Source: Octopus bimaculoides (Eukaryota). Taken from it: DNA of 64,000 nt. Positions 12,080-64,000 of the stretch are shown here, piece after piece. The position numbers and the translations under genes are program-made. Numbering within the stretch: position 1 is the first letter of the stretch; every line of letters begins with the position of its first letter. Under the pieces are notes generated by a model, which ran no database searches, was not told where the DNA came from, and saw nothing but the letters and a program-made list of their open reading frames with translations. The stretch lies in the NCBI RefSeq assembly GCF_001194135.2, contig NC_068983.1:136674939-136738938 (forward strand), given 5' to 3'.

Positions 12080-12133
<54 letters not shown>

Positions 12134-13502: not shown

Positions 13503-13558
<56 letters not shown>

Positions 13559-19641: not shown

Positions 19642-33052
<13,411 letters not shown>

Positions 33053-36000
33053 GTGAGTATCTGTTCTATCTTATCTATCACTCTATATCTATATATCTAT
33101 CTATTTGTCTGTCATATATATATAGTTGTCTTTCTATTTAGAGAACTAACAGTCACAAGTTTCATTTTTGTTAACAGAATCTGAAGCATATTCCTTTAGA
33201 ATTACAATCTACTTTAGAATACAAATATACAGTGATTTTTATATATCTTTCAATTCTAAGGCAATAGCATCATTGTTGCATGAAGTTTCTTTGTCAACTG
33301 TATTAAATTAATTTAATTTTATACTTAATTTGTTATTGTTGTTACTGCTTTTTTTTTTTTACATTTTAGTTTTAAATTTCTGGGGGTTTTTCTTTTGTTT
33401 ATTTTTAATCCCCAAATATTTCATAACAAGACTATTCCTGTACCTGATCTCAAATGAATGCTGCTCTACTTATGATCCAAGGATTGAATATATACAGTGT
33501 TTTTGAGAAAACTGAAATTAAATACAAAACAAAATGTTGTTGGTTCTGTTTAAATTTTGCTGAATCTGTTCTATCTTCTTCAAAGACTTACGGGAAAATT
33601 TTGCTTGCATTCTTAGCATGGCTGCTCTTCTCATTGATCTTAAGCATTAATATTTTGTGTTCTTCACTCAGTTTCAGCGACATTAATTAATGAGAAATTG
33701 TTCTGTATTTTATCTGCTCCTGCTGCAACATAGGAATTAAATATTGGATCAGCATTTAACTTATTTCAATATTACAAGGTTTTTTTTTGTTTTTCTCTCT
33801 CTTCTTTTGTTTAAAAATTGACACTTTCAGTTGTTCAAACAAACAAAAAAGGATAAAAATTATACAAAAGAAACCAACAGTATTTGATATTTTAAATCAT
33901 ATTTTCTGATTCACTGTTTGCAGCTGTAAAAGGAGATTTTTCACACAGTGATATTTTCTTCAACATCACTTTTTGTTTTATAGTGAAGGGGAATCTTTTT
34001 GTTATGTTGTTTGTTTACTGTTGTTACTTTGTGTTTTATATGTTGTTGGTATTTATATATTATCTTGTGAGTATTTTTATCAGTTTAGTTTGAATAAATC
34101 AGTTCAATTTAGTTCAGTTCATAACACACACATGCAGTATATATGTATACGCATGTATATTCACATATATGCATAGAGTTTTAGTTTTTTTTTTCAAATT
34201 GTACTTCTCATTGCTCTCCCTTTCCCTTCATAAATGCTGCTAACTGTTTCTTTTCTTTTTCTTCACATTTTTTTTATATATGCATAGCTTTTTTCTCCTT
34301 TTCTCATATATACATATATGGTGACTGTCCACCAATGTCCAAGGAAGATCATCACTGACAGACATAAGCTATTTATATATAAGTCAGTGACTGTGTGCTT
34401 CCAATTCATCATGTCTGCACACATGGTCATCTTCCCATTACCATAAGAAAATTAAAATAAAAACAGCCTTTTAAAAAAAGAGTACTGAAGTCAGCAATGC
34501 CCATGCAGAATTTTAATAAGGTTTGCACAACACCTCATAAAATTTTTTTACGCTATTGGTATGATCCAGAGACAAGCCTGAACAAGATATTTGGTAATAA
34601 TAACAGTCACAGATCAGGAATGTAAGAGTCATAATCTTTAGCTAATGCTGAAGACTCCCACCAACACTGCCAATGCAGTTTCCTGCATGAATTTTCTACT
34701 TGGAAATATGCTTCAACAGAAGCTAAGGAGTGCAATGAAAACCAATCCAGAATTTCTGAGTCCTTGTGCTCTTGCTAAATAGTTGTTGACTCTATGCTGG
34801 ATCTATCCGCTCTTTTGAAATGTATTGTTTCTATCTTACTAGGTTTCCAGTAATTCTCTTTACCATGATGAAGCCAGTTTAGCTGCCAGTGAACCAACCA
34901 GGCTATTGGTTGTACTGGATTACATGTTACTAATAACATTACTTGATTACATAAAGCACATGTATAAGATCATAATTAAGAAGAATAATATAATTTATAT
35001 ATACATATGATACATATATAATATTTATATGTATATAATACTTATATAATATATGTGTGTGTGTGTATTATTATATCACATACACCTACATGCACATACA
35101 TATATGATTTTATTTTTTATTTATTCATCTAATTATTTACCTACTTAGGTATTTATATATTAGTTATGTTCATTTTTTTTATTCTTTTTTAATTTTCAAT
35201 ATAAATTTGGAAAATAAGTGTTGACTTTGCTATTTTCCATGTGATTGTTTCTTTATATGACAATATGAACTATTTCTGCTATCCATTTATTTGCTATTGT
35301 TATTGTTGTTTTAGATTTTCAATTTTATTTCTGGAGAACTGAACTGTTGTCTTAGAGACTTGTGTATGCTGCCCTGGTGCCATATCATTTGCTATTGAGC
35401 TGTCTGAATTTTTTTATTATATTTTGTTTCGTCCAGCAGGTTTTAATATCAAGAGAATAACACTAAACCTCCCATTCTCTAAACAAAACATCACTTGTTA
35501 TTAGCTTATTTACTAAACTTTTTTTTATCACCCTGCTAAATTCAACATCATCCAGTTAATATAATGCATTTTCCAATTCTACATTATCTTGACAAAGTAA
35601 ATCTCACTTCATACTGTCTACTTTACAGTAACAAATGCAACATTACTTCCATTAGATTATGTTAAATAATATATTACCTTACTAATTATCACTTCAATAA
35701 AGTGAGTATTACCCTATAACTGGATTTATCAAATTAAGATGTATGGTGTATTTAATAATTATTATCAGTTGTTTATTGTTAGCTCCAAATTAAGCTGTCA
35801 GTACCTTGAACCACATATGGTAAACTCAGCTATCAGTACTGATAAAAATTCTAACAAATCATGTTTTTATTTTATATTATGCCACCTTTATCCATGTCAT
35901 ACTGTTAAAATAATATACAAGTTATTAAGCTGTGCCATTTTTATAAAATCTGTTTTCGTCCTAATAAGCAATGTGTCATGCTATGTTAGACCATTAAAAC

Positions 36001-36611
36001 AATACATATCTTGGTAAACACTATCAAAATCAAATAAAACAAAATCATTACTGTTCTAAACAATATGTTACTTTTGTTATAGCAATAACCAACATATAGT
36101 AATTTCTAAATAGTATGACAACTTTATGACCAATGTGTCACTGGTACATAGATATATGACATTGTTAAACAGCATCATGCAAACATCATTTAGCACTGTA
36201 ATATCGCAACAGATATCTTCTCAATCTCTTTTTGCTATCAGAAAAATGTGGATAGTTCCTATAGCCATAAGGTTCTCTCATGTCAGAGATCATTTGAATA
36301 ATGACTTTCTTTCAAAACTTTATACTTATAAAAAAGTTTTTATCAATCAGTAGGTTACTGCATGCTAGCGATTAAAACTTTACATACTTTTCGTGTATGT
36401 GTTCATGGATATGTTTATTTTCATGCCCCATTTGGGGTTTTTTTTTGGTTTTTTTATAAACTCATATGGATTGGTTGTTTGAGCAAATTCGAATATTTGC
36501 ATGATCTTTGCCTTCTTACAGTTCATAACAATGACCTTTCTCTGCAGTGCATCATGGAACCAGGTTATGCTTTGAATAACCTTATGAAGGAAAACTTTCT
36601 CTCTCTCTCTT

Positions 36612-36644
<33 letters not shown>

Positions 36645-38294
36645 TCCATACACACTCAGCAATTTCTTTAAATTAAAATTCTGTTAGAGAATGTAAATAA
36701 ATAATTGCAACTGAAGCATTTATTAAATATGCAGGGGCTACACTAGACAAACCATTACAATTAAAGTATGATAGGTGAGTAAACTGTTGGGTAGTAATGA
36801 TAATAATAATAATCATAATATTCCTTAGCAATTTTATAATACCTAATACCTAATTTTATAGACCTTGTGTAGTATAAAGGTAAAAATTAGACTACCTTTT
36901 TGGTTCTATGAAATAAGAGATATATCAACTATTTCATTCTCATGCCTCCAGGCACCCGTGTTTGTCTATTGGAGGAAAAGTAGCAAAACATTTGTGGAAA
37001 ATTTCCAGGTACTCTATTAGCTTTTTAGTTAGTGGAGTATTTCCCTCCTACCCTATTTATTTAAAGTTGCAATCTAAAATTAAGTACTTAAGTTTTGTAA
37101 CTTATGACATGATTATAGTTAATGCCAGTGCCATAAATTTTAAATTAATCTTCTATATCACTAAACTAAATTGTTGAAGCTGAATGTCAACAAGATATCT
37201 ATTAGCTGAAAGTTTTACAATTTTTAACTTTCACTGGCTCATTCTTCACTTTACTGAAAATAGGTTCCATGGTGAAAGTGCAGCTTACCGCTGTAATAGC
37301 TGCAAGGCAAATGCACAGTTGACTTGCAATATCAAGCTCAAAATCCTACCATAGGTACAGTATAGAGAAACACTCTTCTGATATCAACAGGAATAATCAC
37401 CCATTGAAAGATACATTTGGTTAGGAAAAAGAACTAATACTTTCTTGAGACTGATTCTTTTAACTGATTTCATTAACAGCAAGATTTCAGAATTCTGCAA
37501 CACCATCACTTTTTATTTACATAACTAATACTTTAAATGGAATATTGCTAACTAAATTATAGCCAGATTCCTTTCCTTGTGCTAGCAGTTGTTACAGTAG
37601 GCAAAAATATAAATTTTTCCACTGCTATTAGAAATGATACTTTCACAGGCTTTACACCTATATCTTACTTTGAGTAAAAGCAATTCTTCTTTATCCAAAC
37701 AAATTAGGCACTGATAATATAACTTAAAACATTTTAAGAGGTAATTAGATAAGTAGATTTTATCAAATTATGTAGAATGTAATTAAAAGCAAACAGAATC
37801 AATATTCAATTATTTTGACAATCAATTTGAACTTTAGCATTAAAGAAATAAATTTAGAAAATTGCACTCAGAGTATTCAGTGAAATTATAAACAGAGGAT
37901 ATCCTTAAAAATATCTATACTAAAGTCAGCTAAATAAGTAAACATATTAGTGCACGGTTTTTCTGTTTACTGCTACCATGACATGTTTAGTTTCTTAATA
38001 ACCTAAAACCAAACCAAACAACACAGTTCTTTATGAGATGAAACTCACCAGGATTATATTTTACACACTATATTTTATAAAAATACTATCACTGTATTTT
38101 ATGCTACCAAGTTAATCTTCTTTTTCTGCACAATTTTCTGTTAATTTTTGTGCCTTTCCTATTTACATTGCATGTTTTTTCTTTCTTTTTAATTTTTTCT
38201 TTTCTTTTTATTTTTTCTCAGTTTTTCTCTAACTGAAGTATGTAATATCTAATGAATTCTTTCTTGTTCATTTACTTATATTCTTTGCTCTCAG

Positions 38295-38306
38295 CGAAAC
38301 TCAGAG
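38295..38306 (+). CDS. Cav1: Candidate 12-nt Cav1 microexon in the IVS3-S4 linker (RNSE)
   Basis: Long pyrimidine tract, CTAAT branch-like motif, ttctTTGCtctcAG|CGA AAC TCA GAG|GTTTGT; phase 0, no stop, hydrophilic. No transcript evidence. Confidence 0.5.
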
Positions 38307-38410
38307 GTTTGTTTTCTGTTTCAAATAAATCCACTGGGTTATTGCTTCCATTGATTTAATGTGTATTTTACAATTTTGTTGTGCTTTTATATACATGCAT
38401 ATATACATAT

Positions 38411-38464
<54 letters not shown>

Positions 38465-40155
38465 TGCTAGGCATTATATGCTGAATTTACTGCTCTTGAT
38501 GTTGTTGCTGCTGCTGTTATCAATATTATTGCTTTTAGAAATAGTTATGGCTATGTCCACACGCCTCTGCTATTTGGCTGCTACTGTTGTGTTTTTGTTA
38601 GTGCTAATGATGCTGATAATGATAATACTGTTGCCTTCTCTGATAGCAAGATGTAAACAATGTAAAAAATGCCTAAAAGATAAGTTTAGTTTTAGTATGT
38701 CACTTGAATTTTTCAAAATTTGTAAAACTTACAGGGTGGTGTCAAAAGCTGTTGGTTTTTTTTTTAACTTGATAATTTAAAAATCAAACACATCAAGTTT
38801 TCAATCAAAAGTAAATATAACTTAACACATAATTTTGTTTCTTTTTCTTCTTTGCATATTCATTAAATCAAAAGAAATTGGCTTTTCGAATATGTTCAAC
38901 ACTTCATTTCTCCTAAGATCTTCAAATTAAATTTATTCATTAAAACAGCTTTCTATATTTTCAAAAAGGTATTTTTTTTCTCTTGAAATTATTTCAAAGA
39001 TGATCAAGTAGCATTTTGATCACATTTTCATGGTGGAAACTAATTGCCAAACTAAACTGCATAGTTTAATAATACTGGTTTGAAATGTGAGCTATTCAAG
39101 CAGCATTATCTAAAGAGTAGATACTGAAAAGGAAAAGCATGTACATTGAACAAAAGAAATAAGCTACTTTTCAAAAGAAGCATATCAATTCATTCATATT
39201 TGCACATTGCACAATTGCACATGTGTATCATCATCATCATCGTTTAACGTCCGCTTTCCATGCTAGCATGGGTTGGACGATTTGACTGAGGACNNNNNNN
39301 NNNACGCCAACCAGCTGTAGAAACTCTGCCAAATCAGACTGGAGCCTGGTGTTGCCATCCGGTTTCACCATGCATTTAGGAATATCAACAATAGCATTAG
39401 AAAAGCTTCTAACTTTGCATTTTGACATTGCAGTGATAAGTGCAAGGCCATATTTAATCAGTTTGACATCATGGACTTCATCCATCTATATTGTGATATT
39501 GCAGCCTGTTATCCATATATGTATGAAAACCAAACCCCATCCAATTATGATATGGTGGTAGGAACCATGCTTCCAGTAATTGTTTTAGGTACCTATGTAG
39601 TCATAAGCAAGTACAGACTCTCTCACAGCCCTTCCACCCACCTTAACATCCAAAATGTGACAGCTGAAAAGATAGAAAAGATTTTTAACTGCATGATAGT
39701 GCACTCAACTGAGAGCAATTTCAGCTGAGTAGATTAACAATAGCTTGAAATGAAGAATCTTCCACAAGAACATATCAAGCAATAACTGCTCAGCCACACA
39801 TGTGCATTCACATATATAAATGTTCAGATATGTATACACACGTATCTGTCATCATCATCATTTAATGTCCATTTTCCATGTTGTGTATGTGTATATATCA
39901 GGTCATCCCATATGTTCTGTCTGAATTTTGAATAAAGAAAACAAGTGATCAAATGTTATATTTAATTGAAATTTAATCATCAGTGTACTTTCCCTGATTA
40001 TCTATAACTTCCTTCCATCTATTTACAAGCTTTTTAATAATAAACTGTCATCTAAATTACGCAAAAATGAAAATAACACTGACATCTCATTTTAACAGAT
40101 ATATTTACCAAAATTCCGTAAATATATCTTGAAATACTAAAGAGTAAATTTATTC

Positions 40156-41096
40156 NNNNNNNNNNNNNNNNNNNNNNNNNNNNNNNNNNNNNNNNNNNNN
40201 NNNNNNNNNNNNNNNNNNNNNNNNNNNNNNNNNNNNNNNNNNNNNNNNNNNNNNNNNNNNNNNNNNNNNNNNNNNNNNNNNNNNNNNNNNNNNNNNNNNN
40301 NNNNNNNNNNNNNNNNNNNNNNNNNNNNNNNNNNNNNNNNNNNNNNNNNNNNNNNNNNNNNNNNNNNNNNNNNNNNNNNNNNNNNNNNNNNNNNNNNNNN
40401 NNNNNNNNNNNNNNNNNNNNNNNNNNNNNNNNNNNNNNNNNNNNNNNNNNNNNNNNNNNNNNNNNNNNNNNNNNNNNNNNNNNNNNNNNNNNNNNNNNNN
40501 NNNNNNNNNNNNNNNNNNNNNNNNNNNNNNNNNNNNNNNNNNNNNNNNNNNNNNNNNNNNNNNNNNNNNNNNNNNNNNNNNNNNNNNNNNNNNNNNNNNN
40601 NNNNNNNNNNNNNNNNNNNNNNNNNNNNNNNNNNNNNNNNNNNNNNNNNNNNNNNNNNNNNNNNNNNNNNNNNNNNNNNNNNNNNNNNNNNNNNNNNNNN
40701 NNNNNNNNNNNNNNNNNNNNNNNNNNNNNNNNNNNNNNNNNNNNNNNNNNNNNNNNNNNNNNNNNNNNNNNNNNNNNNNNNNNNNNNNNNNNNNNNNNNN
40801 NNNNNNNNNNNNNNNNNNNNNNNNNNNNNNNNNNNNNNNNNNNNNNNNNNNNNNNNNNNNNNNNNNNNNNNNNNNNNNNNNNNNNNNNNNNNNNNNNNNN
40901 NNNNNNNNNNNNNNNNNNNNNNNNNNNNNNNNNNNNNNNNNNNNNNNNNNNNNNNNNNNNNNNNNNNNNNNNNNNNNNNNNNNNNNNNNNNNNNNNNNNN
41001 NNNNNNNNNNNNNNNNNNNNNNNNNNNNNNNNNNNNNNNNNNNNNNNNNNNNNNNNNNNNNNNNNNNNNNNNNNNNNNNNNNNNNNNNNNNNNNNN
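40156..41096. other. Assembly gap (N run)
   Basis: Run of N; smaller gaps near 8550, 17438, 21659, 39294, 52326 and 59690. Confidence 1.
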
Positions 41097-41468
41097 CAGC
41101 TGTCTGGCTTCCGTGCCAGTGGCACGTAAATAGCACCATTTGAGCATCGCCTTACTGACACATGAAAAGACATTTGAGCGAGGTCGTTGCCAGTTCCACT
41201 GGACTGGCTCCTGTGCAGGTGGCACGTAAAATATACACCATTTTGAACATGGCCATTGCCAGTACCGCCTGATTGGCCTTCGTGCCAGTGGCATGTAAAA
41301 GCACCCACTACACTCTCGGAGTGGTTAGCGTTAGGAAGGCATCAAGCTGTAGAAACTCTGCCAAATCAGATTGGAGCTTGGTGTAGCCATCTGGTTCGCC
41401 AGTCCTCAGTCAAATCGTCCAACCCATGCTAGCATGGAAAGCGGACGTTAAATGATGATGATGATGAT
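41097..41468 (+). mobile_element. Well-preserved copy of the same SINE family, starting at a gap edge
   Basis: Several gccagtggcacgtaaa repeats plus an intact 3' tail ending in (ATG)n. Confidence 0.85.
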
Positions 41469-41500
41469 CACACACACACAAATATATATGCCTATATATA

Positions 41501-42650
41501 TGAGGATAAGTCAAAATTTATACACACTCTTGTTTCTGTAATTTGTTAAAACAAAAACAAGGGTTGAACAATTACATCATTTTTCAACATAGTCTCCTTG
41601 CTTTTTGATGCACTTCTTCCAGCAGTCTATAGGCTTGCTTATTCCATCAGAGAAGCTTTTTGGCTGGTCACACAGCCATTTATGCAGTGCTTCCTGTTCT
41701 TTTTTATCCATAGCAAATCAACAACCTCATAATGAATGTTTTGAGCAGTCTAAAGAAGTAATAGTCAGAATGGGCAAGATCTTGAGTGTATGCAGATGTT
41801 CCAGCAACTCAAAACACAATTTTTCAATGGTGTGGGTGGCCTTATGTGATTATGGCTTGTCGTGCAACAATAAAACTTGATTTGATAATAGATCTCAACA
41901 TTTGATGCAAATTGCTGGTCTCAGTTTGTTGGCCAGCATTTCACTGTAGCCTACATTGGTAATGTTCCAGTTTAAGTCCTTTTGCATCCCCAAAAATGGT
42001 TGCATCACTTTTTCTGTGACAAGTTGAGTCTTGAATTTCTTTTCCACTGATGATTTCTGGTGTGTCCACTCCATCCTCTGCCCTTTGGGTTCTGGCTCAA
42101 AGTGATGAACCCAGGTCTCATCTCGTGTGACTATTCTCTCCAAAAAAGCTTCACCTTCATCATTGTAGTGATTAAGTAAGCATTGACAGATCTTTACACA
42201 ATTGCACTTCTGAGCTTCAGTAAGCTCTTTGGCACCCATCTCACACTGACTTTTCAGAAGCAAAGCTTGTTGTTGATAATTTATGATGCAGAACCATTCT
42301 AATTTGCAAAGGACATGCTTTCTCATCGACTATCACTTGTTGGTTTGCCAGAACCATTTCTCAAGCTTGTTGAATCTTCACATCAGTAATGGAAGTTGAT
42401 GGGCATTTTGTTCTTTCATGCTTCATGCATGTCTGGCCACTTTTTAAACTTTTTGATCCACTTATACACACTTCTTCACAGTAGAGAACTCTCCTCATAT
42501 TGTAGTGAAAACCTGCAATGAATTTCAGCCCCTGACATACCTTCAGACCAGGAAAATCAGATCACTGGTGTATGTTCTTCCTTGGTGTACCCTGCCAGTG
42601 GAGTGGCCATGTTTACTTTGTAACACAAGAAAGAAAACTGGAGCAGTCAA
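41501..42650 (-). mobile_element. Degenerate mariner (DD34D-type) transposon, one end not identified
   Basis: Minus ORF ...FLERIVTRDETWVHHFEPEPKGQRMEW...KKFKTQ (mariner IVTGDETWVHHYEPE motif); TA|TGAGGATAAGTCAAAA TIR-like end at 41501. Confidence 0.85.
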
Positions 42651-42659
42651 AGTTAAACC

Positions 42660-42900
42660 TTGGTTATGTAATCTCAAGAGTACCACCTGGTATGGTCATG
42701 TGATGTGTATGGATGAAGACAGCTGCATAAAAAATTGCCAATTACTAAATATGAAGAAAACTTGTGGAAGATGGAGGCTCAGAAGGTGTAGTACAAAGTA
42801 CTGAAGACCAATCTCGAGTTGTTGAGCTTCATAGAGATGACAAAAAACCAAGATGAGTGGCATTCACCATGCTTGATAAGACCCATCCATCTCAGCCAAA
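42660..42900 (+). mobile_element. RTE LINE 3' fragment
   Basis: WYGHVMCMDEDSCIKNCQLLNMKKTCGRWRLRR resembles the LRWYGHV...GRGRPRKTW motif. Confidence 0.7.
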
Positions 42901-44620: not shown

Positions 44621-44783
44621 GTATATTTATATATATATGTGTGTGTGTGTGTGTTTGTGTTTATGTATTTATTTTGCAAGTGCAAGATTCTTGATGTGAA
44701 ATTGTGTATTGAAACAGATATTATATTTAGTGATGGTGATTTTGCAAATAAGCACATCACTATTTAGTTGATTTTTACTTTAG

Positions 44784-44815
<32 letters not shown>

Positions 44816-47786: not shown

Positions 47787-47825
<39 letters not shown>

Positions 47826-52192: not shown

Positions 52193-52240
52193 AGAATTGA
52201 CAATGACGACCCGTCACAGCCAACGCTATCTTCGGGAGCT
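52193..52240 (+). CDS. Cav1: Candidate 48-nt Cav1 cassette exon in the IVS3-S4 linker (RIDNDDPSQPTLSSGA)
   Basis: cTACTAATgtTGCttcatttAG|AGA ATT GAC...GGA GCT|GTGAGT; phase 0, 16 codons, no stop, GC-rich relative to the flanks, polar loop-like peptide. Confidence 0.75.
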
Positions 52241-55200
52241 GTGAGTACAACAAACCTGTTACTATTAATCGTTTCACCGATTGACACAGCACTACATTAT
52301 TGTTATGCTCACACTTTTATTTCTTTACTTATATATATAATCACANNNNNNNNNNNNNNNNNNNNNNNNNNNNNNNNNNNNNNNNNNNNNNNNNNNNNTA
52401 TATATATATATATATTGTAGTTTCCTTAGTTTGAAAAATGTATGCATTTGTTTGTACAATTTGATAAAATTAGCTTGAATGGGAGGTGGGGTAGTGGTTT
52501 TTTTATGTTGTTGTTATTGTTATTGGTTCAGGAAGGCAGGAATATGAACATTGTGATTTCCCATCTCACAAACACATATAAATACCTGTACACAAAACAC
52601 CAATAATAACAATAACAACAATTTTGCAGCAGAGATAAAATGCAAAATCTTTTCACTTTCTTATCTTTTGCTTTGATTTCATTTAAAATCCTTAAATCCA
52701 TTCTGCTAAAAATCAGCATGAAATTTTTTTAATATATTTAAATAGTTTTTGATTATCTTCATTAAAATTAATGAGTTTTTCTTCAATAGTTTATCAGTAG
52801 CATTAGTTTACCTTTTAGATTATTTCTTCATTACTACTATTTTGAATAAAATTACTAAAAACACTTTTCTGCTCATTGTTTTGTCTCTGCTGTAGTTTTT
52901 TTTCAATTTCTCTTATACTTTATTATTTATTAGTTAAGCTCTCTTTTTTTGTAGAATTTTTTTGTATCAATTCTTAGTATTTGCCACAGTTTGTTTTAAA
53001 TTTTATCTTTGTTATGTTAGCAAAGAAAAACTTCAACCATCACCATTAAATAGATATATTTAGTCTGTTAGTATGTAGTTCACTTGCTATTCCTCATTGC
53101 TATGCTTTATGTATATATATTAATGCTAAACTCCCAAGTCATCTTCTTGGTGTTCAGCATTGCAAAAGCAGTTTTCACTTCTTGTATCTTCTTCTGCGGG
53201 TTCCTTCACACACACATATTTCTTTCTAATTTGTTCTCTATATATATATGTTTATACATGTGTATATATGTCTGTACATGTGTATGTATATATTTGTGTA
53301 CACACACATATGTTTGTGTATGCACTGTACTGTTTATATAATTATGTTTGTGTACATATTATGATTGCTGTTGCTGTGTATGTTAACATATGTGTGCGTG
53401 AATGTGATTATGTAAGAATATATACATGTACATATAAAGAGATTATGTATATGTGTTAGTGATGATGATGCAGATTATGATGATGATGGTGATAATGAAG
53501 AACCTATCACAAGCCTTACTGATTATTTGTAAACTGTAGATTTTATTTTTGAAAACCCTTTTCTTCTTGAATTTTCTTTGAAATGTTCTCATCACTGATT
53601 CCCTTTGATAGAGAGTACTCTGAAGGTAAACAATGAAACAAAAAAAAGAAAAGATTTTAGTTGTCCCTAAAATATCTTAAAACAAAAGATTTCAAGTTTT
53701 TTCAAGAATATTATTAGTACAGTTACTGATATACATATGTATGTGTCCTCCAATGCTTTGTGAAGATTTACTTCTTTCACTTAATTGTTTCCTGTAATTA
53801 TCAAACTGAACAGTTTTGACATCACCTTTTATGAATACAATATCTTGTTGTTAAGAGCCAACAAGGAAGCCTCTACATGGTCGATAGAGCTACTAGTAAC
53901 AGTAGCTAAATCTCCCATAAATCACACTCTACCATATTAGATAAGGACACACTAGATAATGTAATTCTATATTCCTCTAAAAATTGTCACAGCTGAAAGG
54001 CTTTTCATTATAGTTCTGTTCAATGTGTTGACATTAGTGCTAAACCACAATATCTGGCATGTAACTCAATTGTGTCCATTCCATTCTTTCTAAAATACAA
54101 TTTCATAAGTTATTTCTTTATATGATCAAAATGCACAGATGACTTTAAACATAAATATGAAGCCATAGATTGGATATATAACATGCAAGTTCCTCATTAG
54201 TTATACATAGATATTTTCTTTTTGATTTATTTCAGAAATCCAACTTCTGGAGAACTAACTTTTGCAGCAAGTCACTTGTTTCTCTATTTTGTTGTTCCTG
54301 ATAATTATGTCTGAACTACTTGTGTTTGTGTTTTGAAAATATTGTAATGAATGCATTCCCATGTTAGGGAGGAAGTAGTTAGATCAAGCTTTGTGGTGGG
54401 TTTTGAAATCATAACCAGGCAGGGAGTTCTAACTATATATACAGTTCTACAGAGCATTGATTACAAAATGTTTTTCTGCAGTTTTGCATGGATGTGTATT
54501 CTACATGACTGTAGCTTTTTATTATGAGATATATATACATATACACTTATATTTATATAGAAATTAACATATTACTTATAAATTCAATAAGATATTATCT
54601 CTTTGTCCAATAAAGATGTATTATAACAATTAATTTTTTGTAAGTATTTTATACTAAGTGACAAATGGCTCAGATAACTGTCTCGAAAATATAGTATACA
54701 TTTAGTATACCAGTAAATGCAAGTTAAAATTAAATAGGTAGTTCAATACTCCATGTACCATATTTCTTTGTTCACTACAAGAAATCATTGATCTTTTGTT
54801 TAATCTAAAGGAATAATCATTTTGTTAATAAAGGTGGCAAATTTACAGTCATTAGAGTTCTGACTCTCTTTACTGTGAGTTCAAATACCACGAATGTGAA
54901 CTTTGCCTTTTATTCTTTCAAAGTTGATAAAATAAAGTACCAGTCCAGTGCAGTGGATTGAGAGGATGTCATGTGATGCCTTGTGGTATTTGTTCTGGGC
55001 CTTTACATTCTGAGTTCTTGTGTGCCTTTAGCAGAGTCTACTCTGTTGCAAGCATTCAGGTCACCAGTTTCAAGATAACTTCTCCATACATCCCATCACT
55101 CTTAGAGGCCCTTTAAAATCAATTGATGATGGGTACTGTCCTTTCCTACTCAACTAAACGGTAAAAAAAAAAAGCAGTGGGCTATAAATCATGGGGCAGA

Positions 55201-55599
55201 GGCAAGTTTTTAATAAAATAAATTAATATAGCAACTTTGTTTCTCAGTAAACATTAATGTCATTAAAAAGGTATGAACATTATAACTTATTACATTGCTT
55301 CTGTAAAAAAAATCAATTGCATCTTTTTAAATATAATAGAATGACATAGATTGTTTCTGCTATCATTTTCACTGCTTTGAACACTCATATAAAAGCAGAG
55401 ACTGTTTGTGTATCTATTTTCTATATCAATATTTCTATCACAAAGTCTTTTACTTCCTTCATATTATTGACTGTTGGCCATGTTACATCAGTATAAGTGT
55501 ATTGGGAAAACCATATCAATAACTACATGAGACATAAATAGCCTGTCTATATAATCATGTCAAAGCAGTTCACTTTTATTTTATCTGTATGTATTTACA

Positions 55600-56890
55600 T
55601 ATCCTAGAGAATCTTACCTTTCTCTCTGGAACATGATTTTCACATTCTCTAGCTGTTGTGGGAAGAGGTATTCCTTTTCTCTTATTTTCTAGTGGAGTAA
55701 AGACAGTCACTCTGTCATGTCTCCCGGAGCAGTTTGCAGTGGTCAGTGTGAGGCATCTGGCCACATACTGACCTGCTGCAAACTGTGCTGATGGTTTCAC
55801 CAAACTGACCACAAATATTGCATCTGAGTTTGATATTTTACTGCTGTATATATTTTTGGTAGTATTCACTATGGAGATGATAAAATCGGTAGACTTAGAC
55901 AAAATTCTTTGTGGTATTTATTTACAATCCTTTACATTCTAAGTTCGGTTTCTGCTGGGTTCAGCTTAGCCTTTCATCATTCCAGGATCAATAAAATAAG
56001 TATCAATCACAGCTATACTCCTCCTCCAACATGTTTTAGATATGTGCCTGTATTAGAAATCATTATTATTATTAGCTTCTTCGACCAGGCAATGCGTTAT
56101 GTTCTTGAGCAATATTGGGTGCCTGGCATTTGCAATTACATCAGGCAATCACCAATGTCTGCCAGATTAGCAATGCACTCAATGGCAGTTCCACTTTAGC
56201 AATATGTAGAGGATTGATAGTAGGTGAGAGTGATGACATTCTCAAAGAAACTTTAGGCATCAACAAAGATGAATCTGCTAGTCTGTTTCAGAGACTTTCT
56301 AACCAGCAGTTCTCAATCTGAGAGTTCCAGAAAACTTTTGGGTTATGGACTACTATGGATTACTTCCTTGGCCCAGTTAGTGCTACTGTGATACTCTACC
56401 AGCTTCAGACAAACTCTACAAGTATAAGTACTACCAAGCAGGACTGCCTGAGATGCATGATGTAACAGTACTGTATGCAGTCATGTAGTGTTGAAGCTTT
56501 ACTAACTTGTAGAGTTATAATGAAGATTGTCTCACATTTATTTGTCATGTTCATTATGAGGATCAACCTACCACCCTTCTTTACTGAGGCTATGATAAAA
56601 GAGGTTGTGTGGTGGATGAGGCTGAACGGATTGAGGATAGAATCTTTCTCTTCAGTTAAGCCCTCATCAGCTTTTTAAAGTTTCACTTGGAAAGAGAAGC
56701 AGGCTTGTCAAACAGTGGGTAACTTTGGTAAAAATGGTTAGAGTGAAGAGAAGTACCCTAAGCATGCACTTGTGAATTGGAGAACAGTATTTTGGTGAGG
56801 GCTCATGCTCTTGGTAGTCAAGGTGATCTTGTATCTGTGGGATTTCTTGATTGACCCTAGCTAGAAGCCCCCCTTGTATCAGGAGAACTA
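55600..56890 (-). mobile_element. Highly degenerate R4/Dong-like RLE non-LTR retrotransposon fragment
   Basis: Minus strand has a KEGGR-L-like motif near 56570 and LRCNICGQFGETI...RHDRV zinc-knuckle region near 55700-55820; many frameshifts. Confidence 0.55.
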
Positions 56891-57259
56891 TATCAATCAT
56901 GTATTCATAAATTTTGTATACAATGTATATTTTTCTCATCAATTATCCCCACCCCTTTCCTTTTCCTTCTCACTGATTTTATGTAATCCTCCTACCATTG
57001 AATACCCCAGTGGCAAAGACAAGAAATTACTATTAGTAGTTGTATTAATAGTACTATTATTATTATTATTAACTGTAAATTAGCAGAATCATTAGAACAT
57101 TGAGGGAAGTGCATTTGTTTTGGCTCTTTACATTCTGAGTTAAAATCCTGCTGAGGTAAATTTTGCCTTTCATACTCCAGAGTCAATAAAATAATGTATC
57201 TGTCTAGTACTTAGGTCAATGGTATTCCTTCAAAATTGCTGGTTTTACACCTAAATCAA

Positions 57260-57298
<39 letters not shown>

Positions 57299-57311
57299 GC
57301 TATCATTATTA

Positions 57312-57662
57312 GTAATATTTTATAGGATTGAGGTAACTCCTCCAGTAGGTATACAGAAGCAAAAAAACAGAAGAGGGCCATTGTTATCAAGTGAATGATA
57401 TTTCGGCATCTGGTGTACCTTCCACAAGTTCAAAAAATAAACTTGTCAATCTACTTCATTTTTGATAATATTTTATAGGATTGAAGTAACAATAGCGCTC
57501 TTTCTTTCCTTTCTTTTTTTTTTTTTTCTTTTTTGCTTCTGTATACCTACTAGAAGAGTTATCTCAATCCTATAAAATATTACCAAAAATGAAGTAGCTT
57601 GACAAGTTTATTTTTTGAACCTGTGGAAATATCGTTCACTTGATAACAATGAAACTCTTCTT
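57312..57662. repeat. Foldback inverted repeat between two (ATT)n microsatellites
   Basis: The reverse complement of 57530-57662 matches blocks 57312-57367, 57368-57401 and 57420-57490 with few mismatches. Confidence 0.9.
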
Positions 57663-57676
57663 TTATTTGCTTATTA

Positions 57677-57725
<49 letters not shown>

Positions 57726-58529
57726 ACACAACTTATTTGATGAATGCTTCTCTGAAAGCCATAGCATTTTATCCCTGTATCCCTTAATACTACTTGCCTA
57801 AGTATTCACAAATAACAGCGATCAAAACAAACCCTCAAGCTGTAATAACTATTAATGACAGGAATAAAAATCTATGACCCCTGATAGAAATCTCAATTCC
57901 TTCTAATAAAAATGTTAAAGTGAAAAAATTTGAGGATCTACCAAGGGATCAAGATTTTAAAATGGAAATAAGAAAGTTGCAGGTTATAAATTTAAAAGCA
58001 TGATTAATAATAATTAAACATCAAGGTGATAAACAAGAACATGAATAAAAGCATAATGAGTATATCATATCTTATAAGTCTACATTAATCATCATTAACA
58101 TCATCATCATCTTCTATCATCATTATTATTATTATTCTGGATCACTCAATTCTGGCTATTCAACTTGAATAAGCCTTTTATTCTTAATTTTTCTTTTCCA
58201 ACTAAATTTGTTTCTTCTCTTTCTCCCCTTTTTTGTTTACCTTTCTTTGCCTTGTTTTCTCTTTGCACTCATTTGTAGACATGGAATTTAATTCTAAAGA
58301 TCATTTTATTATATAAGGCTTCTATATACAATAGCCTATACTCAATTATATCAGTCTCTAATCTGTTATTTCTCTGTACTGTCATATTCACTACATCTAA
58401 ATACATTCACTTCTCTTTCAGACTCTCTTTTCCTTCTCTTTTACTGTTTTCTTTATTTCTAATTTCTTTGCTTCAAATTTATAGATTCAGTTCCACCAAG
58501 AGTTGCTGCTACACATACAAATGTGTGCA

Positions 58530-58584
<55 letters not shown>

Positions 58585-58609
58585 GCATGCATACAAGCAT
58601 ACATACATT

Positions 58610-58660
<51 letters not shown>

Positions 58661-59254
58661 ACACACACACACACACACATATATGCTCAGTTGCAGTTCT
58701 TAATTAAGAACCAAATAATGCTCGACTATGAATATAGTGAAAGATATATAATGTAGTTTCATGATTATCATACTAACAATGATCATGACTCACAGTTTCA
58801 TATAAAAGTATCCATACATCACACTCATCAGATGGGCACATTTGAGATCCATTATGTGATACATTATTACTTTTACATGAAACCCAGAGTCATGGCCATC
58901 ATTTGTTAGTATTGCCATCATTAAATGATGTTATATATATATGTATAGTTACAATTTTTCATTCAGTGACTTTTATTGGATGAAATTTTATCAAAACAAC
59001 TTTTCGTAGAATAATTTTGTAAGTATATTATTTTGTAGATTTCTTTTCTTTTTGAGATGATCGTTTAGGGATACTAAAACTTCAGATCAACCAACCAGAC
59101 AACATAGTTCAAAATTCTCAACGTCTACTCATGGCTGCTCAGCACAGATTACTTCTCTTATAGCTGATATGAATTTCAAAACCAACTGACTGACTACAAC
59201 TTTAATCTTAACCTTAACTTTTTGATTTGGTAAAAAGCTGTTTCAGTTGTTTAA

Positions 59255-59462
59255 CCCTTTTGATACCAAACTGACGTGAAATTACCTCTGGTTCTGTAGT
59301 ACAACTGCCTTGTTTTCAAAAGTTCTGAATTAAAATCTTCCACCAAACCTTTGTCACAATTTATGTTCTAAAAACTAAGTTATTTTACTAAGTCCTCTGT
59401 TATACTTAAAATTAATTGAAAGAAACACAGAGCATCTCAACAGAAATATGGTAACAAAAGGG
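59255..59462. mobile_element. 208-bp piggyBac-type MITE
   Basis: TTAA on both sides (59251-59254, 59463-59466); TIRs CCCTTTTGATACCA / TGGTAACAAAAGGG match at 13 of 14 positions. Confidence 0.85.
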
Positions 59463-59597
59463 TTAATGGAAATCGTTGTCGTCGTTTAACGTCCGCTTTC
59501 CATGCTAGCATGGGTTGGATACATTTACAAAATTATGCTGTTAAAAGTTGTTTCAACAAAATGTCATCGGGTGAAAAGTCATGCTACAATTTATATA

Positions 59598-59629
<32 letters not shown>

Positions 59630-59631
59630 TT

Positions 59632-59689
<58 letters not shown>

Positions 59690-60090
59690 NNNNNNNNNNA
59701 CACACATACACACACACACATACATACACACACATACATACATACATACATACATACATACATGCGTATGTATGCATGTTTAAAAATTTGACTATGAGCG
59801 GTGTATTATTATAATTAATCCTTCCATGATCAATTTTACCTTTCATTTGGGTTGATGAAATAAGTACTAGTTTAGTACTGAGGCCAGTTTAATTGACTAA
59901 CCTTTTTCCTCAGACTTGTGGCCTTTTTGCTTTTGTTAGAAATCATTATTATTAACAGTAGTAGAGTTGCAGAATTGCTAGAATTCCAGAAATGTGCCTT
60001 GCAATGTTTGCATTCTGAGTTAAATTCATCCTTTTGAAGTCTATAAAATAGTTACCAGTCAAGTACTGCAATTGATTTAATCATCTTTTC

Positions 60091-61295
60091 CTTACTCCTG
60101 ATTTGTGATATTGTGTCGAATTAAAAAAGACAGTAAGGCCTGCAACAAAATACCTGACAATATTTAACTACATCACTGTATGTTCTGAGTTCATATCCTG
60201 CTCAACTTTACTCCTGATTTGTGATATTGTGTCGAATTAAAAAAGACAGTAAGGCCTGCAACAAAATACCTGACAATATTTAACTACATCACTGTATGTT
60301 CTGAGTTCATATCCNNNNNNNNNNNNNNNNNNNNNNNNNNNNNNNNNNNNNNNNNNNNNNNNNNNNNNNNNNNNNNNNNNNNNNNNNNNNNNNNNNNNNN
60401 NNNNNNNNNNNNNNNNNNNNNNNNNNNNNNNNNNNNNNNNNNNNNNNNNNNNNNNNNNNNNNNNNNNNNNNNNNNNNNNNNNNNNNNNNNNNNNNNNNNN
60501 NNNNNNNNNNNNNNNNNNNNNNNNNNNNNNNNNNNNNNNNNNNNNNNNNNNNNNNNNNNNNNNNNNNNNNNNNNNNNNNNNNNNNNNNNNNNNNNNNNNN
60601 NNNNNNNNNNNNNNNNNNNNNNNNNNNNNNNNNNNNNNNNNNNNNNNNNNNNNNNNNNNNNNNNNNNNNNNNNNNNNNNNNNNNNNNNNNNNNNNNNNNN
60701 NNNNNNNNNNNNNNNNNNNNNNNNNNNNNNNNNNNNNNNNNNNNNNNNNNNNNNNNNNNNNNNNNNNNNNNNNNNNNNNNNNNNNNNNNNNNNNNNNNNN
60801 NNNNNNNNNNNNNNNNNNNNNNNNNNNNNNNNNNNNNNNNNNNNNNNNNNNNNNNNNNNNNNNNNNNNNNNNNNNNNNNNNNNNNNNNNNNNNNNNNNNN
60901 NNNNNNNNNNNNNNNNNNNNNNNNNNNNNNNNNNNNNNNNNNNNNNNNNNNNNNNNNNNNNNNNNNNNNNNNNNNNNNNNNNNNNNNNNNNNNNNNNNNN
61001 NNNNNNNNNNNNNNNNNNNNNNNNNNNNNNNNNNNNNNNNNNNNNNNNNNNNNNNNNNNNNNNNNNNNNNNNNNNNNNNNNNNNNNNNNNNNNNNNNNNN
61101 NNNNNNNNNNNNNNNNNNNNNNNNNNNNNNNNNNNNNNNNNNNNNNNNNNNNNNNNNNNNNNNNNNNNNNNNNCTTACTCCTGATTTGTGATATTGTGTC
61201 GAATTAAAAAAGACAGTAAGGCCTGCAACAAAATACCTGACAATATTTAACTACATCACTGTATGTTCTGAGTTCATATCCTGCTCAACTTTACT
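60091..61295 (+). repeat. 116-bp tandem repeat spanning an assembly gap
   Basis: Unit ttactcctgatttgtgatattgtgtcgaatt...catatcctgctcaact occurs at 60092, 60208 and 61175; copies appear identical. Confidence 0.85.
60315..61173. other. Assembly gap (N run)
   Basis: Run of N. Confidence 1.
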
Positions 61296-61773
61296 TTTGA
61301 TTTTTCTGGAGATTAATAAAGTATCTGTTGAGTACAGTTGTCATAAAATTTGTTGCCTTAATGCCTTCATTGGGGGGTGGGGGGTCATCTGTTTACTCTC
61401 CATTTTGCCAAGAATAAGTAATTCAATACCTTGGTCATTCTTCTTATAATGCTCATCACTCATTTTGCCAAATATTAGCTCTCAGAATGTAAAGGAACAT
61501 AACTAAATATTGCAAGGTCTTTTGTCTGGTACTCTAACAGGTAATTTTTTATCAACCCTGGAGAAATGAAAGACAAAGACAGACTAGATGGGATTTGAAC
61601 TCAGAACATAAAGAACTGTAACTAAATACCACAAGGTATTACTGTCTGACATGTTACTGATTCTGCCATCCAATAACCTATGATGTTGATTTCTAACTTA
61701 TATTCAGTCATGCAAAACTAGTTATTAGTTTATGCCCTTTGATAACATTATTTAATTTATTATTATTAATACT

Positions 61774-61962
61774 AAGGCTGTGAGTTGGCAGAATTGTTAG
61801 CATACATTATCTTTACATTTTGAGTTCAAATGCCACGAAGGTCAACTTTGCCTTTCATCCTTTCAGGGTCAGTGAAATAAGTACCAGTCAATCACTGGGG
61901 TTGATGTAATCAACTAGACTCCTCCCCAAAAATTTTAGGCCGTGTGCCTATAATAGAAAGGA

Positions 61963-61965
<3 letters not shown>
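61774..61965 (+). mobile_element. Nin/Deu-core SINE copy ending in (ATT)n
   Basis: gagttcaaatgccacgaaggtcaactttgcctttcatcctttcagggtcagtgaaataagtaccagtc...gtgcctataatagaaaggatcattatt. Confidence 0.75.
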
Positions 61966-62006
<41 letters not shown>

Positions 62007-62810
62007 CTTGACTCGGGATTGGTCTTGTTCCTGTTAGAATTTATGTGGGTAACAGGTTACTACCAGTACCTTTAGATATCCACATAAATCATCATCATCA
62101 TCATCATCATCATTATTTTTCATGTTTTTTTTTTTTTTTCAAACTATCAAACATTCTTCAATAGTTGGATCTGTCTAAATTTGACCATTTCACCAACCTG
62201 CGCTCTTTATCTTTCCTGCTCTTTTTATTTCTTTTGTTGCTTTTATTTTCAGATATCTTCTGTTTATTTTAATTTTATTTGTTTATATTTTTAATTTCTA
62301 ATTTATACTATTACTCTTTCACTGGTTCCAGCCAGTGGCCTATGGGTCATAGTCACCAAATATCAAAGCTAACTTTTTCTTTTCTTTTTTTTCACTTTCT
62401 TTTGTATTTTTTATTTGTCTTTATTTTATTTATTTTTTGCTTCTTTGTCTTATTTACTATTCTGCTTTTACAAACTGCTTTTAAGATGCTGTACTCATAC
62501 ACACAGCTCACACACACAAACATACACATGCTGACGAATAAAAACATTATAATTAAATGCATGTGTGTGTGGATATGATAGGCATGCATATAGCATGCAG
62601 CACTTAAATATATATGTTTCTATATACATGTTTAAATAAATGCACACATATTTATACACATATGCATATATCAAAACACATATGCAACTATGCACATTTA
62701 TACACATACGCATGCAATCTCCCATACAGGCATATATACAAATAAACCAATGTAAGTACATCGATACAGAAATATAAATGCATTCAATGCATACAATACA
62801 CACACGTGCA

Positions 62811-62848
<38 letters not shown>

Positions 62849-63314
62849 TGTGTATGCAACATTAATAAACGAAAGAAAATAATTACTTTTCTCCTCTTTA
62901 CTTCTTTTTATGTTTTTTCTTCTATTATTTTGTTGAACTTGCCTATTTATTCTGCAGCTTTTCTCTTAAGACTTTATTTTTTTTACTGTTTCTTTTTATT
63001 TCAATTCTTCCTTTTCACTTGAATTCTTCTGCTTGGTAAAAAAAAAGTCTAAACTTCACTGGAATCAAGTTACAGCCTAACATGGAGAATTTCTCAAAAT
63101 ATGCAAAAGTATTCCTCAACAATGAATTTATTTGCTCTTTAATACTTCTTTCAATTTTCTTATTCTATTTTCTTTCATGAAAGATTTTTCATCTTTTTTT
63201 TCATGTCTTTAATTCTTTCTTGTACTTTTTTTCTTTCTTTTCCATCATTTTTACTAATATATCATTGCATTCTGAGCTAATGGTCACAATCCTCAATTTT
63301 CTCCAAAACATTAT

Positions 63315-63355
<41 letters not shown>

Positions 63356-63961
63356 CAAACACATGCATGCATACATGCATATATACACACATTACACACA
63401 GTAATATTGATATATGCATCTTATATCTATTTCGATTGTCACCTTCATCAATGTGACAGATGATATTTACATGAAGTCATTTTTCTATATTTTCTGTGGT
63501 AGCTCTCTCTGGATAATTCGGCAAGTACTCTCTTCCTGATCATTTCTTCCAAAATCACTTACCTGTAACTGACCCAAATCTCACTTGGTTCTCTAACTGT
63601 GTTAATAACTCTTATCCCAGTATATAACATCCTTCGAACGTGAGGTTTGCACTGTAGTTAGGATTTTTTCCTTCCATTAAAAGTTTTTTTTTTTAAATCA
63701 ATAATAATCATAATAATGAAAATAATAACAATAATAATCATAATAATTTTTTTTTCAATTCTGTTCTTTTCCAAAACCAAACCATAATTTTTCTTCCTAA
63801 CAATATATTTTGCTTTTCACATTGGTCTCTGATATAAAATTAACATTCTGTATCTAATAATGCAGAAATGAGTGGGGATGCTATATGTTTTTTTTTTTAA
63901 GGATGCCACTGTTTTTCCTTCTTGTGTTTTCCGAAGTTTCTTAGTGCCTTCTTTATATAAA

Positions 63962-64000
<39 letters not shown>

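Follow-up and report, generated by a model that had tools for sequence, protein, structure and literature searches.

The locus raises the question of what occupies the long interval that follows the IVS3 exon of a calcium channel gene in this 64,000-nt stretch of DNA (the window), and where the next coding exon, IVS4, is to be found. Judged from its sequence, the gene is a Cav1 (L-type) alpha-1 gene, of which eight exons, from IIIS4 to IVS3, are located in the window. Once joined, these exons give a clean 317-aa open reading frame that is identical to Octopus sinensis Cav1 at 313 of 317 positions, and the top named matches are L-type, "muscle calcium channel alpha-1" and CACNA1D proteins, which places the gene with Cav1 and not with Cav2, Cav3 or Nav. 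The IIIS4 voltage-sensor repeat and the domain III pore with its selectivity Glu are both present in the window. When the full O. sinensis protein is used in tblastn, only residues 992-1335 are covered by the window; this orthologue (P0498) contains four Ion_trans domains, GPHH and Ca_chan_IQ, of which the window itself spans IIIS4-IVS3 only. The exons are as follows, the first seven having been placed by tblastn with AG/GT boundaries:

19683-19770, + strand: Cav1 constitutive exon 1 of 7 (IIIS4-IVS2 series)
21053-21160, + strand: Cav1 constitutive exon 2 of 7 (IIIS4-IVS2 series)
22723-22775, + strand: Cav1 constitutive exon 3 of 7 (IIIS4-IVS2 series)
25415-25561, + strand: Cav1 constitutive exon 4 of 7 (IIIS4-IVS2 series)
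27458-27659, + strand: Cav1 constitutive exon 5 of 7 (IIIS4-IVS2 series)
29447-29605, + strand: Cav1 constitutive exon 6 of 7 (IIIS4-IVS2 series)
30492-30602, + strand: Cav1 constitutive exon 7 of 7 (IIIS4-IVS2 series)
32969-33052, + strand: Cav1 constitutive IVS3 exon, 84 nt, phase 0/0, 28 residues (cag/AAC...AAT/gtgagt)

The introns between these eight exons are 1282, 1562, 2639, 1896, 1787, 886 and 2366 nt in length, matching the range of 886-2639 bp given in an earlier note on this DNA. The IVS3 exon ends in TEVN, with the conserved outer countercharge Asp ("D4") located 8 residues before the exon end.

The interval from 33053 to 64000 is very probably the start of the IVS3-to-IVS4 region of an octopod Cav1 gene with three alternatively spliced phase-0 cassettes:

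38295-38306, + strand: cassette microexon 1, 12 nt (CGAAACTCAGAG, encoding RNSE), phase 0/0, the sole RNSE-coding site in the window
52193-52240, + strand: cassette exon 2, 48 nt, 16 residues, phase 0/0, a unique match (tblastn 16/16 against O. sinensis X1)
63503-63520, + strand: cassette microexon 3, 18 nt (CTCTCTCTGGATAATTCG, encoding LSLDNS), phase 0/0, a unique match

Across the 64 kb, the three + strand frames encode each cassette peptide a single time; the three sites follow the order of the mRNA and are bordered by AG and by GT or GC. They map between the IVS3 exon and the IVS4 exon, at the conserved intron after ...E-x-N. The acceptor of microexon 1 is ...ctttgctctcag (score 9.4) and its weak donor is gtttgt (score 5.1); the acceptor of cassette exon 2 is ...gttgcttcatttag and its donor gtgagt; and microexon 3 has the acceptor ...ttctgtggtag and the GC donor gcaagt. 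Taken together, the cassette donors score 5.1 and 6.9, in addition to the one GC donor, compared to 7.8-12.4 for the constitutive donors, as expected of optional exons. All three cassette lengths are divisible by 3, with phase 0/0 and no stop codon, so inclusion or skipping is neutral to the reading frame. In the proposed mechanism, the cassettes of 12, 48 and 18 nt, which stand 5-14 kb of repeat-rich intron apart, would be included or skipped by alternative splicing, and the extracellular IVS3-S4 linker would be extended from 6 residues (NPGSPI) to 22, 26 or 32, possibly with other combinations. By analogy with vertebrates, longer linkers may shift activation to more positive voltages, and one Cav1 gene (the only one known in octopods) could provide several gating set-points.

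This reading was compared with the isoforms X1-X5 of the O. sinensis "muscle calcium channel subunit alpha-1-like" protein (XP_036357314.1, XP_036357315.1, XP_036357316.1, XP_036357317.1 and XP_029634462.1), a comparison at the level of isoform models in O. sinensis, RefSeq XP isoforms being computed models. Such models are usually backed by RNA-seq. XP_036357314/15 (X1, X2) contain all three cassettes (12 + 48 + 18 nt), XP_036357316 (X3) contains the 12- and 48-nt exons, XP_036357317 (X4) contains the 48-nt exon only, and XP_029634462 (X5) has no cassette and reads NPGSPI; that is, RNSE is found in X1-X3 and is absent from X4 and X5, and LSLDNS is found in X1 and X2 only. The number of residues added between TEVN and the IVS4 exon is 0, 16, 20 or 26. 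The earlier note had predicted 0, 4, 16, 20 or more, and the annotated values bear this out, except that a form with the 4-residue addition only is unannotated. Its 12-nt (38295), 48-nt (52193) and 18-nt (63503) candidates are retained at their exact positions, their peptides being present in the O. sinensis RefSeq isoforms, and these cassette-bearing isoforms show that position 33052 is not joined directly to IVS4 in every annotated form. A further candidate of 14/12 nt at 53612-53625 (+ strand) was rejected: an exon of 14 nt would shift the frame, translation in phase 0 gives RVL-stop, a form of 12 nt has no GT or GC donor, and the peptide was found in no O. sinensis isoform. The O. sinensis gene is orthologous to the window gene, with 4 substitutions in 317 residues, and the cassette peptides and their order are identical; because the two species are very close, this identity is weak evidence of constraint.

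The cassettes can also be followed outside O. sinensis. The Argonauta hians gene model contains the 48-nt exon with one substitution, 15 of 16 residues being kept, and in the O. vulgaris model the 48-nt exon is absent. In decapodiforms (a cluster with Acanthosepion pharaonis CACNA1D), full-length transcripts assembled from separate runs within a single SRR series agree at 99.7% identity, and their sole indel is 18 nt at the IVS3-S4 junction, which supports an optional 18-nt QRLDAS exon directly before the IVS4 exon. QRLDAS and the octopod LSLDNS have the pattern xxLDxS in common and share 9 of 18 nucleotides, and the two exons are likely orthologous; no 12-nt or 48-nt cassette was found among the decapodiform sequences compared. 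Thus, the proposal that several optional short phase-0 exons lengthen the IVS3-S4 loop agrees with the O. sinensis isoforms, the Argonauta model and the decapodiform transcripts.

How freely the three cassettes are combined is a separate matter. It is possible, though rather unlikely, that the exons are real and non-combinatorial, with essentially a short and a long state or else a nested set of fixed forms, some annotated isoforms being low-abundance noise or model artefacts. Four of the eight combinations are annotated, and these are strictly nested (none; 48; 12+48; 12+48+18), no 12-nt-only or 18-nt-only form being present among the annotated O. sinensis isoforms; the exons may therefore be included in a hierarchy, not in free combination. 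Similarly, the Argonauta and O. vulgaris annotations hold a single form each. On the other hand, the decapodiform 18-nt exon is used without the 48-nt exon, so independence is possible for at least this cassette, and oysters have a choice of two inserts, REKGDLK or QDVELD.

A more speculative proposal, to which we would give somewhat less credence still, is that in octopods the three cassettes are independent and tissue-specific, giving up to 8 linker lengths of 6-32 residues and graded activation thresholds in muscle, heart, chromatophore and neuronal L-type currents, and that the conserved Srrm/eMIC neural microexon programme may control the two shortest exons. If this were true, splicing at one loop would accomplish part of what the four vertebrate Cav1 paralogues achieve. 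The 12- and 18-nt exons fall within the microexon length limit of approximately 27-30 nt, and the 48-nt exon is above the strict definition. A UGC motif placed shortly before the 3' splice site is a criterion for Srrm3/4 (eMIC) neural microexons. TGC is found at -9 to -7 of the 12-nt exon and at -12 to -10 of the 48-nt exon and is not found before the 18-nt exon, numbers that are too low for significance; near the constitutive acceptors it occurs in 1 of 8, within the tgcag splice site itself.

It is very improbable that the interval is no more than an intron swollen by transposons, in which chance AG...GT open frames were mistaken for exons, by the gene-prediction pipeline as well. Stop-free phase-0 mini-exons at comparable splice-score thresholds number 27 on the + strand and 16 on the - strand, which served as the control; splice-site scores alone would not single out the three cassettes, and their confirmation thus rests on outside evidence and not on sequence statistics. 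The reverse-transcriptase debris, dispersed repeats and satellites in the interval favour this chance reading, as does the GC content of the 48-nt exon, which at 52% exceeds the 29-42% of the constitutive exons here. However, the three peptides recur in the correct order in independent models, the 48-nt exon is conserved at 15/16 in Argonauta, an optional exon of 18 nt occurs at the same junction in assembled decapodiform transcripts, and exact single-copy matches of 16 and 6 residues with splice sites are far beyond chance.

The remaining part of the interval is intron, as shown by the following segments:

33053-38294, + strand: intron segment A, 5242 nt, from the IVS3 exon to the 12-nt microexon, with no coding match
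38307-52192, + strand: intron segment B, 13.9 kb as assembled, with transposon debris and gaps at 39294-39303 and 40156-41096
52241-63502, + strand: intron segment C, 11.3 kb as assembled, with gaps at 52346-52398, 59690-59699 and 60315-61173 and no coding match
63521-64000, + strand: intron segment D, start only, with the IVS4 exon placed past the window end

Segment B contains an RVT_1 reverse-transcriptase fragment (48496-48912, - strand) and repeated blocks, and its gap flanks are repeats; the gaps of segment C lie within (TA)n and (AC)n microsatellites and a 116-nt tandem repeat. In total, the five gaps are all intronic and break no exon, and they adjoin microsatellites, the 116-nt tandem repeat or dispersed repeats. 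The cassettes follow one another as in the mRNA, and this argues for a correct scaffold order across the gaps. The earlier description of the IVS3-S4 interval as giant overstated the contrast with introns of 0.9-2.6 kb: positions 1-19682 are likewise exon-free, so that the opening 19.6 kb of the window consists of intron as well, and the orthologous O. sinensis gene spans approximately 459 kb. In all likelihood, the length of the interval reflects a build-up of transposons, satellites and microsatellites that is typical of a gene of roughly 0.46 Mb, with no special property of an exon "bank".

No IVS4 or later exon was detected in 33053-64000 on either strand by an S4 regex or by tblastn, in which the queries were human Cav1.2 (an approximate sequence) and the full O. 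sinensis protein; the regex and both tblastn queries agree with the earlier observation that the IVS4 exon is missing from the 31 kb after the IVS3 exon. O. sinensis residues 1336 onward, including the IVS5, pore and IVS6 exons, have no tblastn match in the window, and no PGSP-coding site is present anywhere in its 64 kb. Because the 18-nt exon at 63503 is 3' of all gaps and 5' of IVS4 in the mRNA, the IVS4 exon must, on this arrangement, lie beyond 64000 and outside every N gap. In two more distant relatives, IVS4 is also absent within 4.3-7.5 kb after IVS3, despite short other introns. That an N gap conceals the IVS4 exon, or that a misjoined scaffold disguises a short intron, is scarcely credible: two N gaps are approximately 0.9 kb each and could accommodate this exon, which in vertebrates is only approximately 130 nt, but the position of the 63503 exon, the lack of any later exon in the window, the collinearity of the cassettes with the mRNA across the gaps, the approximately 459-kb orthologue and the two distant relatives all speak against it.

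Other protostome Cav1 genes, namely those of oysters, abalone, wasps, cockroach and mosquitoes, also have annotated optional inserts at the EVN/PG..I site. Besides the two oyster inserts named above, these include YQRECNVTGDVCRYV in Haliotis, ARLHVKAGVS(P)LPNVKT in braconid wasps and TPTRFK in cockroach. As in octopods, this junction is found both in short forms, whose linker has 6 residues, and in longer ones; the other protostomes have one insert (two alternative ones in oysters), whereas octopods have three that are stackable. No sequence relationship links the protostome inserts, suggesting that at this conserved intron inserts have been gained repeatedly or turn over rapidly.

In vertebrates, the optional exons 29 (Cav1.1), 33 (Cav1.2) and 32 (Cav1.3 and Cav1.4) have the same insertion point as the octopod cassettes, and the phase-0 cassette logic is common to both. 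The vertebrate IVS3 exon is 84 nt, as in the octopod, and vertebrate Cav1 genes also have mutually exclusive IVS3 exons. Vertebrate Cav1 has one cassette per gene, of 11-19 residues, whereas the octopod has three separate ones of 4, 16 and 6 residues, and no sequence similarity was seen between the two sets. The 6-nt IVS3-S4 microexon of Cav2.1 and Cav2.2 (inserts named NP and ET, respectively) is, like the octopod microexons, a very short optional exon in the domain IV loop, and in those channels it tunes gating; unlike the octopod cassettes, it belongs to a paralogous family and is a single 2-residue insert.

Functionally important alternative exons in the IVS3-S4 linker are found in all L-, PQ- and N-type channels (PMC6161609), and all four vertebrate Cav1 genes have an optional exon in this loop, where V1/2 shifts with how long and how flexible the linker is (PMC5279877). 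When the exon is included, activation is right-shifted (PMC5279877, PMC8980814, PMC6161609), and skipping of the loop exon left-shifts voltage sensitivity (PMC8980814); for exon 33, exclusion shifts V1/2 by approximately 6 mV, the splice effect in Cav1.2 being modest and context-dependent (PMC6161609). D4 is conserved throughout the CaV family (PMC6161609). The octopod TEVN end lies 7 residues past the D4 Asp, and the spacing in Cav1.2 is equal (D1327 ... N1334, followed by exon 33, residues 1335-1345; PMC6161609). The earlier claim that such a system had not been described for a cephalopod Cav1 holds in that no published description or functional study of the octopod cassettes was found in the literature searched, but the isoforms were already in RefSeq. 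The three-cassette octopod loop, implicit in those isoforms, is a variant of the known splicing switch of vertebrate Cav1.

A section of a Cav1 (L-type) alpha-1 gene, which encodes a calcium channel, lies on the plus strand of the window, and L-type channels are the named database matches of its protein. The eight exons listed below, the last of them the IVS3 exon, were placed by tblastn and have canonical AG/GT boundaries.

19683-19770, plus strand, exon 1 of the window
21053-21160, plus strand, exon 2
22723-22775, plus strand, exon 3
25415-25561, plus strand, exon 4
27458-27659, plus strand, exon 5
29447-29605, plus strand, exon 6
30492-30602, plus strand, exon 7 (IVS1-S2 loop)
32969-33052, plus strand, exon 8, the IVS3 exon (84 nt, phase 0 at both ends, donor gtgagt)

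By joining these eight exons, an open frame of 317 residues is obtained, which runs from IIIS4 to IVS3. The seven introns between them measure 1282, 1562, 2639, 1896, 1787, 886 and 2366 nt, in agreement with the range of 886-2639 nt that the earlier note had given for the introns between the constitutive exons. The window protein is identical to O. sinensis Cav1 at 313 of 317 positions; the source species is a close octopod relative and not O. sinensis itself. In exon 7, the window codons at 30507-30509 and 30519-30521 are AAA (K) and GAT (D), and the window sequence differs here from GENEGYSNVL, which is common to O. sinensis, O. vulgaris, Argonauta and the decapodiform sequence. On the compared sequences, the simplest account of the E and N of the other cephalopods would be an A/G difference in the first position of each codon. 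Coleoid A/G positions of this kind are candidate sites of A-to-I recoding or of its hard-wired equivalent.

The IVS3-S4 loop of this channel is variable among annotated octopod models. Once four copies of the window peptide were used as the query, full-length proteins were recovered, octopus isoforms included, and the best match was 'muscle calcium channel subunit alpha-1-like isoform X3 [Octopus sinensis]'. Five O. sinensis isoforms, all of them computed RefSeq models, fall in one cluster and differ in this loop.

Table. Composition of the IVS3-S4 loop in octopod Cav1 models
O. sinensis X1 and X2: all three cassette peptides, LSLDNS included
O. sinensis X3: as X1 and X2, without LSLDNS
O. sinensis X4: the 16-residue (48-nt) peptide only
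O. sinensis X5: no insert, TEVN-PGSPI
Argonauta hians model: the 16-residue peptide only
O. vulgaris model: no insert

The annotated O. sinensis mRNAs therefore carry 0, 16, 20 or 26 extra loop residues. Each of the three cassette peptides is encoded exactly once in the window, considering any plus-strand frame; the sites, each preceded by AG, have the following order.

38295-38306, plus strand, 12-nt cassette (RNSE), followed by GT
52193-52240, plus strand, 48-nt cassette (16 residues), followed by GT
63503-63520, plus strand, 18-nt cassette (LSLDNS), followed by GC

The 12-, 48- and 18-nt phase-0 candidates, first proposed from the sequence, are thus the single-copy sites of the O. sinensis isoform peptides. 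Three symmetric phase-0 cassettes occupy the conserved intron that follows the IVS3 exon; the finding is real, and the first reading of it is largely correct. The loop isoforms are already in public RefSeq records, and no paper on cephalopod Cav1 loop splicing was recognised in full-text literature searching.

Splice-site statistics were also obtained, with a generic position matrix and with thresholds at the level of the earlier candidates. In 33053-64000, 27 stop-free phase-0 mini-exons were found on the plus strand and 16 on the minus strand, which served as the control. The 12-nt exon ranks third and the 48-nt exon 18th among the 27, and the 18-nt exon, whose donor is GC, is undetected; as independent proof of the cassettes the scan was rejected, the real exons not being conspicuous in it. 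The cassette donors score 5.1 and 6.9, besides the one GC donor, and the constitutive donors score higher (7.8-12.4). With a GC content of 52%, the 48-nt exon belongs to the top 2% of 48-nt windows, but this is uninformative because the constitutive exons of the window are not GC-rich (29-42%). None of the candidate cassettes lies inside a within-window repeat in the self-similarity comparison. A further 14/12-nt candidate at 53612 had to be abandoned: the 14-nt form shifts the reading frame, in phase 0 the translation is RVL followed by a stop codon, and the 12-nt form lacks a donor. A TGC occurs 7-12 nt 5' of the acceptors of the 12-nt exon (38275-38294) and the 48-nt exon (52173-52192); upstream of the 18-nt exon it is missing, and of the eight constitutive exons just one is preceded by it. 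An upstream TGC fits the pattern of Srrm/eMIC-dependent microexons. The two motifs could reflect microexon control of this type or chance, the counts being too small to carry meaning.

The next constitutive exon is absent from the window. After 33052, neither IVS4 nor any later exon was found on either strand with an S4 regular expression or with tblastn, using O. sinensis and human Cav1.2 queries, which agrees with the failure of the earlier note to find IVS4 in the 31 kb after the IVS3 exon. The full O. sinensis orthologue matches the window over residues 992-1335 only (tblastn), and there is no PGSP-coding site within the 64 kb. The window contains eight N gaps, five of them in 33053-64000, and these five adjoin (TA)n/(AC)n microsatellites, a 116-nt tandem repeat or dispersed repeats. 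The 116-nt repeat (1.9 identical copies, 60092-60314) enters the gap at 60315-61173 and restarts from 61174; this gap of 859 N most likely represents unresolved copies of the 116-nt satellite. No coding segment of the window is in contact with a gap, and therefore frame continuity across the gaps is not in question. That IVS4 is hidden in a gap, which would make the intron short, is ruled out because the 18-nt exon at 63503, which precedes IVS4 in the mRNA, lies 3' of every gap. IVS4 must lie beyond 64000. Consequently, the distance from IVS3 to IVS4 exceeds 30.9 kb, and the cassettes cut it into stretches of 5.2, 13.9, 11.3 and more than 0.48 kb. An older model in the octopus cluster, MetaClust UPI00069519AF (P0501; 669 aa), starts exactly at PGSPI, the start of the IVS4 exon, and seems to be a gene model broken in two by this long interval. 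The arrangement described here accounts for its apparent break, and such microexons are easy to overlook when the gene is annotated.

The interval itself is less unusual than had been claimed. No Cav1 exon was found in 1-19682, where IIIS1-S3 are absent, and therefore the intron before IIIS4 also exceeds 19.6 kb; the O. sinensis gene, with 2200 encoded residues, extends over about 459 kb, and a partial Argonauta model over 195 kb. The compact 13-kb cluster of eight exons, flanked by two long introns, is the exception, rather than the long interval. The size of the interval is best explained by repeat accumulation, and transposon debris helps to explain its length.

48496-48912, minus strand, reverse-transcriptase (RVT_1) fragment
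41895-42326, minus strand, open frame without Pfam match, which we take to resemble a mariner-type transposase
43921-44147 and 45245-45467, duplicated block of about 225 nt

The interval is also rich in simple repeats, with repeated blocks. In Rfam and tRNA scans, no Rfam family, tRNA or other sign of an intron-hosted RNA gene was found in the window. Four long eukaryotic contigs (L001-L004) from ENA metagenome assemblies ERZ25073280, ERZ26859067, ERZ21930224 and ERZ21930236 represent more distant relatives; they match the window in exons only, their Cav1 cluster introns are much shorter, and they stop 4.3-7.5 kb past IVS3 without IVS4. In three of them (L002-L004), IVS3 ends in IIYAEVN, as in Lymnaea. 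Since two more distant relatives among these contigs have no IVS4 within 4.3-7.5 kb, their other introns being 0.3-2.4 kb, an intron of comparatively large size may be an old feature of this position.

Similar optional exons are present outside octopods. In a second cluster, which groups with Acanthosepion (Sepia) pharaonis CACNA1D, full-length transcripts were assembled from public RNA runs. The transcripts of SRR23936173 and SRR23936177 are 99.7% identical across 6.2 kb, and their sole indel is 18 nt, CAAAGACTTGATGCCTCG, encoding QRLDAS. This insert lies exactly between ...GAAGTCAAT and CCCGGGTCT..., the same junction as that of the octopod cassettes. Because QRLDAS and LSLDNS agree in size, slot and the pattern xxLDxS, the decapodiform 18-nt exon is probably, from sequence comparison, the counterpart of the octopod LSLDNS exon.

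The matches of short protein queries were limited to proteins of at most 1.75 times the query length, and no full-length cephalopod protein was included; the representative-library search returned no full-length mollusc protein. Among these matches, invertebrate Cav1 linkers, taken between ...EVN and ISINFFRL, vary in length between 6 and about 50 residues (some 90 arthropod and nematode linkers).

Table. Annotated optional inserts at the EVN/PG..I junction in other protostomes
Oysters (P0382, P0515, P0396): REKGDLK or QDVELD, or no insert
Haliotis (P0450, P0520): 15-residue Cys-containing insert, or none
Braconid wasps (P0477, P0479): 16-17 residues, or none
Cockroach and mosquitoes: 6 residues

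The optional inserts of bivalves, gastropods and insects are unrelated in sequence, and this junction appears to be a hot spot of splicing in general. Since octopod, decapodiform, bivalve, gastropod and insect inserts all occur at this same junction, the evidence points to a splicing hot spot of ancient origin within the domain IV voltage sensor, re-used repeatedly. Among the annotated inserts examined, no arrangement is richer than the three stackable octopod cassettes.

Among the mechanisms by which vertebrate calcium channels set the voltage of their activation, alternative splicing of the IVS3-S4 loop is one of the most thoroughly studied. The octopod cassettes enter the loop at the very point used by Cav1.2 exon 33: in both channels, the conserved D4 aspartate (D1327 in Cav1.2) lies 8 residues from the end of the preceding exon. 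An optional exon occurs at this loop in all four vertebrate Cav1 genes (PMC5279877), its omission shifts voltage sensitivity to the left (PMC8980814), and omission of Cav1.2 exon 33 gives a shift of about 6 mV (PMC6161609). Together, the octopod cassettes contribute four Asp and one Glu but only two Arg, and hence a net negative charge. By analogy with the vertebrate channels, we infer that the cassettes would change gating, the most likely effect being a rightward shift of activation that grows with the length of the loop. The loop lengths of 6, 22, 26 and 32 residues form a natural series in which the influence of linker length and charge on a voltage sensor could be examined. Octopod and vertebrate Cav1 genes use the same intron position, but the octopod gene has three stackable cassettes where the vertebrate genes have one.
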